A stretch of 64,000 bases of DNA, from assembly GCF_009834535.1 (NCBI RefSeq), contig NC_045717.1, positions 20,212,001 through 20,276,000 on the forward strand, given 5' to 3'. The notes under the pieces were generated by a model, which was given only the letters and a program-made list of their open reading frames with translations, did no database searches and was not told the origin of the DNA. This document shows positions 16,950 to 18,692 of this stretch, piece after piece. Source of the DNA: Camelus ferus (Eukaryota). A program made the translations under genes and the position numbers. Positions within the stretch are counted from its first letter, which is position 1. The number at the start of each line of letters is the position of its first letter.

Positions 16950-17041
16950 CATTCTTCACATTTCTGTCCCATTGGGTGTTTCTCCCCCTAAAATATCCTG
17001 CTGAATTGAGGAGTCTTTGACTTTTTGATTCATTTCCCATT
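16950..17041 (-). CDS. KRAB gene coding exon 4 (linker) with in-frame TGA at 16956-16958
   Basis: ttag|AATGG...GAAATG TGA AGA ATG|gtaag, encoding EWEMNQKVKDSSIQQDILGGETPNGTEM*. It is 92 nt, versus 83 nt for the equivalent exon in ZNF177 and ZNF559. Confidence 0.75.
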
Positions 17042-17271
17042 CTAAAGTAAAAGAGAGTAACCAGTGTAAGAACTTGCAGGAAGTAGTATAGGTTAGAATA
17101 TTATCAGGGAAAGAAAGTAAACAAGTTCTGAATAGAGTATACAACAAAATGAAAGTTAAAAAAGAAACAACAGGAGACTAATGATCTTAGCTTTCTTAAC
17201 AAGTTTCCTCATTATAATCCCAAACACATGGAAGCTTTCATTGACCACAGAAGTTTTTCATAATTGCTCAC

Positions 17272-17352
17272 CTTGGAGGGCTCCTCTCTCCACTGTCCTA
17301 AACTCTCCTTGTTCCAACCAAGAGATCAGAGCCGGTTTGAACGACTTATAGC
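17272..17352 (-). CDS. KRAB-B exon (coding exon 3)
   Basis: atag|GCTAT...CAAG|gtgag, 81 nt, open: GYKSFKPALISWLEQGEFRTVERGALQ. Confidence 0.82.
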
Positions 17353-17624
17353 CTATTCACAAGGAAAGATATATTAACAGAAATAGGTCCTATAAATCAT
17401 GACAGACCATCCATGAATCAAATTCTATACTTCTAATGAATGTAGTAAAATTATTTTAAATGAGATAAACAGGCAAACATCCCCTCCTTCTGTGCCCCCA
17501 AAAGATTATGTCTGCTCCTGAAACCCAGTTCTGATGTATATATATGCATTTAAAAAGCATTAAGGCTTTTATGGAAAACAGAAATAAAGTGGGGAAAAAA
17601 AAAGATTTTCATTCTCATGGCAAA

Positions 17625-17810
17625 ACCACTACATCACTGGTTATCAAACTTTGGTGTCCATTAGAATTATTTCAAGTGTTTGTTAAAACACAGATGACAG
17701 GGACCCAATGCCAGAGTTTCATTCAGTAGGTCAAAGGTGGAGTCTGAGAATGCACATTTCTAAGAGAGTAACAGTGATACTGTTAGTCCTAAAGTCATAT
17801 TTTTACAAAA
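17625..17810. mobile_element. MER5A-like hAT MITE
   Basis: tggttatcaaactttgg...gagtttcattcagtaggtcaaaggtggagtctgagaat...catttcta. Confidence 0.7.
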
Positions 17811-17955
17811 ACCACCCAAATTAAAATCCATTCATAGAAACACAGTGTGTTAATGCCCATTGTATTCCGATTTAACATCACCCATCCTGGAACAAAGAAG
17901 TACATTACACCTTGTCCTCTTCAGTAAGAGGCTACAGGAGTGGTGGCGGCCTTAC

Positions 17956-18082
17956 CCGTGGTGATCAGGTTCTTGTAGTTCTCCAGCATCACATCTCTGT
18001 ACAGGTTTCTCTGAGATAGGTCCAGTAAAGTCCACTCCTCTTGGGTGAAGTTGACAGCCACATCGCCAAAGGTCACAGCATC
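17956..18082 (-). CDS. KRAB-A exon (coding exon 2)
   Basis: Canonical 127-nt exon, ttag|GAT...ACGG|gtaag: [42 protein letters not shown]. Confidence 0.9.
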
Positions 18083-18603
18083 CTAAGGCATTACACACAT
18101 GCTGGATTCAGTAAAGTAACACCTCCACCAATGTTCACTGGGAAATGAAGATGTAGCACCCCATGGCAACAGAGGGATTCAAGGACTCTTACCATCTCCC
18201 CCAGGACACACTGGTCCTCGGTTCTCCTCTAATTACACTCACTCATGATTGATATCCTTCATTTTATAGTGGAACCTGTAACACATGAACTCATCTGGCC
18301 CAACTAGCCTAAAATTTCTTTCTGTCTTTTTTCCTTCATTCAGGAACCCCTGAGAAAACTGCAGACACTTGTAAATGCTGATGAATGAATAAACTTTTTT
18401 GAGAAATGCACATTCTCATCTTCCTTGTCTGTCAGTGCACAGAGCAAAGTAAGAGTTGTGCAGTCTATCATGAGAATCATATGAGGGGGTAATAATTGAA
18501 ATACTGAGATTATGCAAGGTAATCTTGTCACCAATATGTGGACAAATGGTCCATCTGGTGGATGCAGTACACCACTTTGTAAAAGGATACACTTTCTTCT
18601 TAC

Positions 18604-18692
18604 CTGAGAACAATTTGTCAAACACTCAGTCACCATCCTTTCTCCCTCTATCTTTTCTTCAGGAAGGCAGAAAGGGTTCTTAGAAAGAACAC
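18604..18692 (-). CDS. First coding exon of the KRAB gene (ATG at 18636, MVTECLTNCSQ)
   Basis: ctag|GTGTT...CTCAG|gtaag, 89 nt. The upstream in-frame GVLSKNPFCLPEEKIEGER resembles the ZNF426/561/562 N-termini. Confidence 0.78.

Follow-up and report, generated by a model that had tools for sequence, protein, structure and literature searches.

Does a KRAB zinc-finger (KZNF) gene that has lost its fingers still encode something that a camel uses, or are its KRAB exons simply what decay has left? The question is raised by a locus on the minus strand of a 64,000-nt stretch of the Camelus ferus genome (RefSeq assembly GCF_009834535.1, contig NC_045717.1, positions 20,212,001 to 20,276,000), referred to below as the window and numbered from its first letter. 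An earlier note, made from the letters of the window, had proposed that four intact KRAB exons followed by a ruined finger exon give a stable message for a KRAB-only protein. This protein was suggested to act as a TRIM28 adaptor or decoy, and the locus to be more than a plain pseudogene. We compared the locus with its relatives in other artiodactyls, followed it in RNA and asked how its exons have diverged among camelids.

Gene structure and annotation

Splicing the minus strand in silico between 14300 and 18900 joins the exons into an ORF of 108 aa that ends at a TGA (16958-16956), 6 nt before the donor. The parts of the gene are:

18604..18692, minus strand: start exon; ATG at 18636-18634, donor GT at 18603-18602, 5' edge drawn from an AG only
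17956..18082, minus strand: KRAB-A exon; 127 nt, AG/GT flanks, Pfam match
17272..17352, minus strand: KRAB-B exon; 81 nt, AG/GT flanks
16950..17041, minus strand: linker exon; 92 nt as spliced in camel, made up of 83 ancestral nt and the 9 nt between tandem donors
16956..16958, minus strand: TGA stop codon; bases 16958-16957 are the site of the ancestral proximal donor GT, now TG
16489..16949, minus strand: last intron; GT..AG, 461 nt, spliced out of most RNA contigs, with a minority still containing it
15060..16488, minus strand: decayed C2H2 finger array, now 3' UTR; placed by alignment to the intact goat ORF, RNA depth 81 and 91
14490..15059, minus strand: rest of the last exon as drawn in the earlier note; older degenerate finger remnants past the goat stop position

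The four coding exons described in the note are therefore borne out, with AG/GT flanks present and a spliced frame open throughout. Its placing of the TGA 6 nt upstream of the last exon junction was likewise reproduced by splicing, and this junction (16950/16488) is seen in RNA. The first exon stands in part. Its start codon is well placed for initiation, with A at -3 and G at +4, and matches the MVTECL and MVADC starts of goat, cattle and paralogue models in the alignment, and its donor is in place, whereas its 5' edge at 18692, set by an AG at 18693-18694 that may or may not serve as acceptor, is putative. Upstream of the ATG (18637-18735) the frame is open across the presumed acceptor, and the RefSeq model of C. 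bactrianus begins at an in-frame ATG near 18735, 33 codons upstream, giving a protein of 141 aa whose 33-aa extension is hydrophobic (MVLSVCLCLFSFF...).

Residues 14-53 match the KRAB domain of Pfam (PF01352, E = 6.6e-25, scoring 86.9 bits where the cut-off is 20.4), and KRAB-A aligns with the KRAB domains of ZNF568 (7w5q, E = 7e-17) and ZNF93 (7z36, E = 7e-16). When aligned to these two structures, the camel KRAB-A retains all of the A-box motifs DV, EEW and MLE (...YRDVMLENY). Of the two hallmarks of a KZFP, the gene thus has a KRAB on its own 127-nt exon but has no open in-frame C2H2 array in its last exon.

The KRAB-only ORF is already annotated in RefSeq, as a protein-coding 'ZNF426-like' gene, and the locus is an ordinary one. 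The protein that it matches best is 'Zinc finger protein 426, partial [Camelus dromedarius]' (99% identity). The 90% cluster of this dromedary match contains an identical 108-aa protein of C. ferus (XP_006179466.3), together with proteins of 108 aa from dromedary (1 difference) and alpaca (6 differences) and the 141-aa model of C. bactrianus. At the DNA level the window is 99.2-99.6% identical to the loci of C. dromedarius (L001) and C. bactrianus (L008).

Around the locus lies a tandem KZNF cluster, with neighbours at about 30889-28012 (minus strand), 47549-43950 (minus strand) and 62148-63470 (plus strand); these three other KZNF genes or remnants of the window are partly masked by runs of N. 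In alpaca, the upstream neighbour is annotated as a 537-aa protein with KRAB and fingers. Between the KRAB-only locus and the next upstream KZNF gene are two CpG-rich blocks (23400-23699 and 24900-25499; GC 0.55-0.60, CpG observed/expected 0.83-0.97), which are candidate promoters or may hold a 5' UTR exon.

Origin of the stop codon

The 9 nt in front of the last donor had been read in the note as an insertion. This does not hold. We aligned the locus with goat (L003), narwhal (L004, two inverted copies), a camel paralogue (L002) and spliced transcripts (L005, L006). Homologous bases are present in all of the genomic relatives, namely goat, both narwhal copies and the paralogue, which rules out an insertion: the 9 nt are ancestral. 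They are flanked by two tandem donors, a proximal one (G/GTAAG) and a distal one (/GTAAGT). Ruminant models use the proximal donor (..GIEK/), and cetacean models use the distal donor and read the 9 nt as VTL. In camel the proximal GT has become TG, with the loss of this donor and the gain of an in-frame TGA, and this substitution is the real lesion. Alpaca has TAA at the same codon. The shared position of the TGA and TAA indicates that the substitution that destroyed the donor is older than the camel-alpaca split.

The 9 nt themselves are borne out by contigs. The letters TGAAGAATG occur without differences in independent contigs of three runs (X1, X2 and X8, the X8 contig being unspliced), so they are not an assembly slip.

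Decay of the finger exon

Goat provides an intact point of reference, with an open finger ORF of about 12 fingers (L003:16621-18114) and all upstream exons intact. Against the goat exon, the reading frame of the camel finger exon is shifted 7-8 times net and interrupted by 3 robust in-frame stops within about 1430 nt, in agreement with the note's description of an exon broken by many frameshifts. The frame changes at about 16225, 16161/16143, 15902, 15693-15656, 15610, 15246 and 15187, the stops are at 15598, 15346 and 15231, and several Cys/His ligands are lost. Two further 'stops' in the goat-projected frame, at 15770 and 15175, are alignment-register artefacts and were excluded from the count. 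The camel paralogue (L002) was considered as an intact reference and dropped, its fingers being decayed too.

The lesions differ in age. Alpaca has all three stops, along with four of the frameshift sites (about 16225, 16161/16143, 15246 and 15187). A +2 at about 15660 and a +1 at about 15608 are found in all three Camelus species and only there, and an extra T at 15894 is confined to the window and C. bactrianus. From this mixture of shared and lineage-specific lesions we conclude that decay set in ahead of the Camelini-Lamini split and continues today.

Transcription and the fate of the message

RNA runs contain 57-74% of the sampled words of the locus. Contigs of four runs (Logan contigs, unstranded) were mapped on 16330-17950; X1 and X2 come from one study and are labelled reproductive system. 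In these two runs, respectively, a 58-nt unitig joins 16950 to 16488 across GT..AG at depths of 39.9 and 50, against 14.9 and 11 for the unspliced path (16460-16978). Depth over the finger exon is 81 in X1 and 91 in X2, and over introns 2 and 3 it is 0-3. Neither run gave a contig upstream of 16978, a gap that carries no weight as evidence of absence. A 778-nt RNA contig runs colinearly from 16489 into the finger exon. Given the spliced unitig and the unchanged TGAAGAATG in RNA contigs, splicing does occur at the last junction and the stop is genuine. The spliced transcript that the note had predicted is thus seen at its last junction, where the spliced form exceeds the intron-retained one.

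When a stop codon lies 50-55 nt or less upstream of the last exon-exon junction, exon-junction NMD is not expected. The camel TGA ends 6 nt before 16950/16488, so the rule predicts no NMD, as the note had reasoned, and the message would not be expected to be an exon-junction NMD target. This escape is nevertheless no special feature of the locus. Splicing at the ancestral donor would give a stop 116 codons into the finger exon, and any stop there would be equally immune. The escape is trivial because the whole finger array of a KZNF gene sits in the last exon.

One RNA contig of another run has an unusual structure. In a 516-nt contig of X5, at depth 3.8, the two ends of intron 2 meet head-to-tail, its last base (17353) running on into its first (17955). 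A circle of the full-length intron could account for this, as could a tandem duplication in the animal sampled or an error of assembly; a lariat branch is ruled out, since the two ends meet at the 3' splice site.

Divergence of the KRAB exons

Neither the eight splice sites nor the 108 codons carry a lesion in any of the three Camelus species or in alpaca, and the stop is retained as a stop in both lineages (TGA, TAA). To judge how far such openness could arise by chance, we used the lesion density of the finger exon, 10-11 in 1430 nt. This density predicts about 2.4 lesions for the 324-nt ORF, and the probability of none is about 0.09, which is suggestive and not significant. If splice dinucleotides and the donor-loss/stop lesion are counted as well, the probability of at most one is about 0.19, again not significant.

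The substitutions are more telling. Between camel and alpaca, the exons differ at 8 of 389 positions (2.1%), the introns at 39 of 1815 (2.15%) and the finger exon at 34 of 1422 (2.4%). Within the 324-nt ORF there are 6 nonsynonymous differences (N8D, T29A, K48N, K56Q, F58V and T106I in alpaca, two of them in KRAB-A) and no synonymous ones, where neutrality would predict 5.5 and 1.5. The probability of at least 6 nonsynonymous differences is 0.47 at an omega of 1, 0.06 at 0.5, 0.007 at 0.3 and 0.001 at 0.2. An omega of 0.3 or less is thus rejected (P = 0.007); the counts are small, and an omega near 0.5 is only marginally disfavoured. The comparison of camel with alpaca therefore gives no sign of purifying selection after finger loss, with a ratio of 6:0 and exons that diverge as introns do. 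The note had itself named a dN/dS near 1 in the KRAB exons as the outcome that would speak against a function, and this is the outcome obtained.

The picture differs when the camelid branch is followed all the way back to its separation from other artiodactyls: KRAB-A has accumulated 6 nonsynonymous and 6 synonymous changes along it. This means that KRAB-A was constrained over part of the branch, most simply before the fingers died. Lineage-specific counts used goat, narwhal, paralogue and transcript outgroups. The lineage-specific omega of about 0.4-0.6 that they gave for camel was set aside, since such crude counting does not discriminate: applied to the goat gene, which is intact, it yields about 0.9. 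Intron 3 of alpaca (L007) carries a 78-nt insertion relative to camel (window 17042-17271).

KRAB-only relatives

Other KRAB-only models with a linker-exon stop occur in the family, at a 93-aa camel locus and in narwhal copies. The camel locus is the paralogue at L002:10001-13400 (C. bactrianus CM109927.1), which lies about 96 kb away along the same chromosome and carries the annotation 'ZNF426' (93 aa). It has lost the acceptor of its linker exon, in which a 1-nt deletion gives a TGA, and of the four fingers that are still recognisable one contains a stop. This makes it a second remnant of the KRAB-only kind in the family. In narwhal, the finger exons of both inverted copies (L004:9738-14937 and L004:46843-38959) are decayed. 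Copy A has open KRAB exons and is annotated as a KRAB-only 'ZNF426-like' gene, and copy B has a frameshift in KRAB-A and has lost splice sites.

Two transcripts represent another route to a KRAB-only product. L005 and L006 (Logan transcripts SRR17481189 and DRR849171) use an acceptor upstream of the canonical one, their homology to the window beginning 31 nt before the camel acceptor (from 16519), and encode a 142-aa KRAB-only ORF (...TEMMGRKDQ*). In this family, KRAB-only messages thus arise by alternative splicing too.

Discussion

Looking across the analysis, we consider this camelid ZNF426-like KRAB zinc-finger gene without its DNA-binding part to be, with a probability of roughly 0.8, an ordinary transcribed pseudogene with a leftover KRAB-only ORF. 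It has lesions relative to an intact relative, these are shared by sister species and continue to accumulate, and the pattern of substitution is neutral. The sequence of events was probably as follows. Before camel and alpaca separated, the finger exon would have gained at least four frameshifts and three stops, and in the same period the proximal of the two tandem in-frame donors of the linker exon was probably destroyed. Splicing would then have been forced to the distal donor, 9 nt downstream, with a stop codon falling inside those 9 nt. The promoter and the checked splice sites appear still to work (the last junction to judge by RNA, all sites in that their sequence is intact), and the resulting mRNA would have the leftover 108-aa KRAB part as its sole long ORF. 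After the split, the KRAB exons would have changed at the neutral rate and further frameshifts would have built up in the finger exon. Because the KRAB exons have drifted neutrally since then, we regard the ORF as a remnant, with no sign of upkeep by selection.

The alternative with the most to recommend it is a functional KRAB-only protein of the KRAB-O type, in which the 108 aa are translated and the A-box binds TRIM28, as a decoy or as an adaptor via other partners. KRAB-O proteins are a known class, thought to arise through loss of the finger region (PMC3579818), and the camel locus offers a canonical KRAB-A box with DV, EEW and MLE, a last junction that is used, a stop whose position predicts no EJC-dependent NMD, and an ORF and splice sites that are intact in four camelid genomes and listed as protein-coding in RefSeq. 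Against this are the 6:0 differences and the equal divergence of exons and introns between camel and alpaca, which reject an omega of 0.3 or less, the two alpaca changes within KRAB-A, and an openness of the ORF that is within chance (P about 0.09). We therefore consider such a protein unlikely. The note's preference for a TRIM28 adaptor or decoy over a plain pseudogene runs counter to a KRAB ORF that diverges at the rate of introns, and the comparisons lend no support to a functional TRIM28 decoy. A more speculative version, to which we give very little credence, is that the leftover 108-aa peptide may be translated in camelid reproductive tissues, where it would titrate or redirect TRIM28, and that the 6:0 excess would reflect adaptive change, not drift. 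A functional KRAB-only product would make the locus a natural example of a KZNF gene that died and was put to new use as a TRIM28 modulator; what we observe points against this.

The value of the locus could instead lie in its RNA. The transcript might be a non-coding RNA, or its transcription might regulate neighbouring KZNF genes, the ORF being irrelevant in either case. RNA depth is higher over the dead finger exon (81 and 91) than for the junction forms, and the locus does lie within a tandem KZNF cluster. However, neither the finger exon nor the introns depart from the general local divergence to alpaca (2-3%), no block stands out as conserved, and there is no pointer to a structured or conserved RNA element, which makes this reading highly improbable. 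Finally, the spliced junction could derive from a processed retrocopy or another DNA source and not from RNA of this locus. The contigs are unstranded, and intronic contigs are present, hence some DNA or pre-mRNA is in the libraries. Counter to this, the joined form has 3-4 times the unspliced depth and more than 10 times that of introns 2 and 3, in two libraries, and the RefSeq models of several camelids share a CDS end compatible with the junction. We can scarcely credit a DNA source for the junction on this evidence.

The transcribed pseudogene that we favour is the kind of locus that birth-and-death evolution routinely produces in a KZNF cluster. By default a KZNF pseudogene looks just like this, with an open KRAB ORF beside a finger exon that is dead, and such KRAB remnants are listed as protein-coding by automatic annotation.

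Comparison with known systems

The closest relatives, going by the names of the best protein matches, are in the ZNF426 / ZNF266 / ZNF560 group (human 19p13.2 family). The plan of the gene is the same, with a start exon, a 127-nt KRAB-A exon, a KRAB-B exon, a linker exon and one finger exon. The goat relative is intact; the camel copy differs in its dead fingers and its linker-exon stop. One-to-one orthology with human ZNF426 would be no more than putative: goat, narwhal and the camel paralogue each have about 74-75% DNA identity to the camel copy.

KRAB-O (KRAB-only) proteins are a recognised class, with 36 members in mouse and 27 in human, some of them inside KZNF clusters, and loss of the finger region has been proposed as their origin (PMC3579818). 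Mouse KRAB-O bridges SRY to KAP1/TRIM28, and the DV motif of the A-box is required for KAP1 binding (PMC3579818); that the A-box is needed for binding KAP1/TRIM28 is also reported elsewhere (10.1101/2020.09.09.288324). The predicted camel product likewise consists of KRAB-A and KRAB-B without fingers and is encoded within a KZNF cluster. Its ORF plausibly also stems from finger loss, and its A-box has the predicted KAP1-binding motifs. It differs from KRAB-O proteins in that it is known from sequence and RNA, and in having evolved at the neutral rate since the camel-alpaca split (6:0).

The linker exon resembles tandem alternative 5' splice sites that are a multiple of 3 nt apart, here two GTAAG-type donors separated by 9 nt and in frame. 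In camelids, the proximal site is destroyed, which leaves no choice of donor, and there is a stop within the extension.

The locus as a whole is most like pseudogenes, unitary or duplicated, that are still transcribed and have their premature stop in the last exon or no more than 50-55 nt away from the final junction. It shares with them its lesions, its transcription and its splicing, and nothing notable sets it apart. The one twist is that its stop codon was made by mutating one of two tandem donors.
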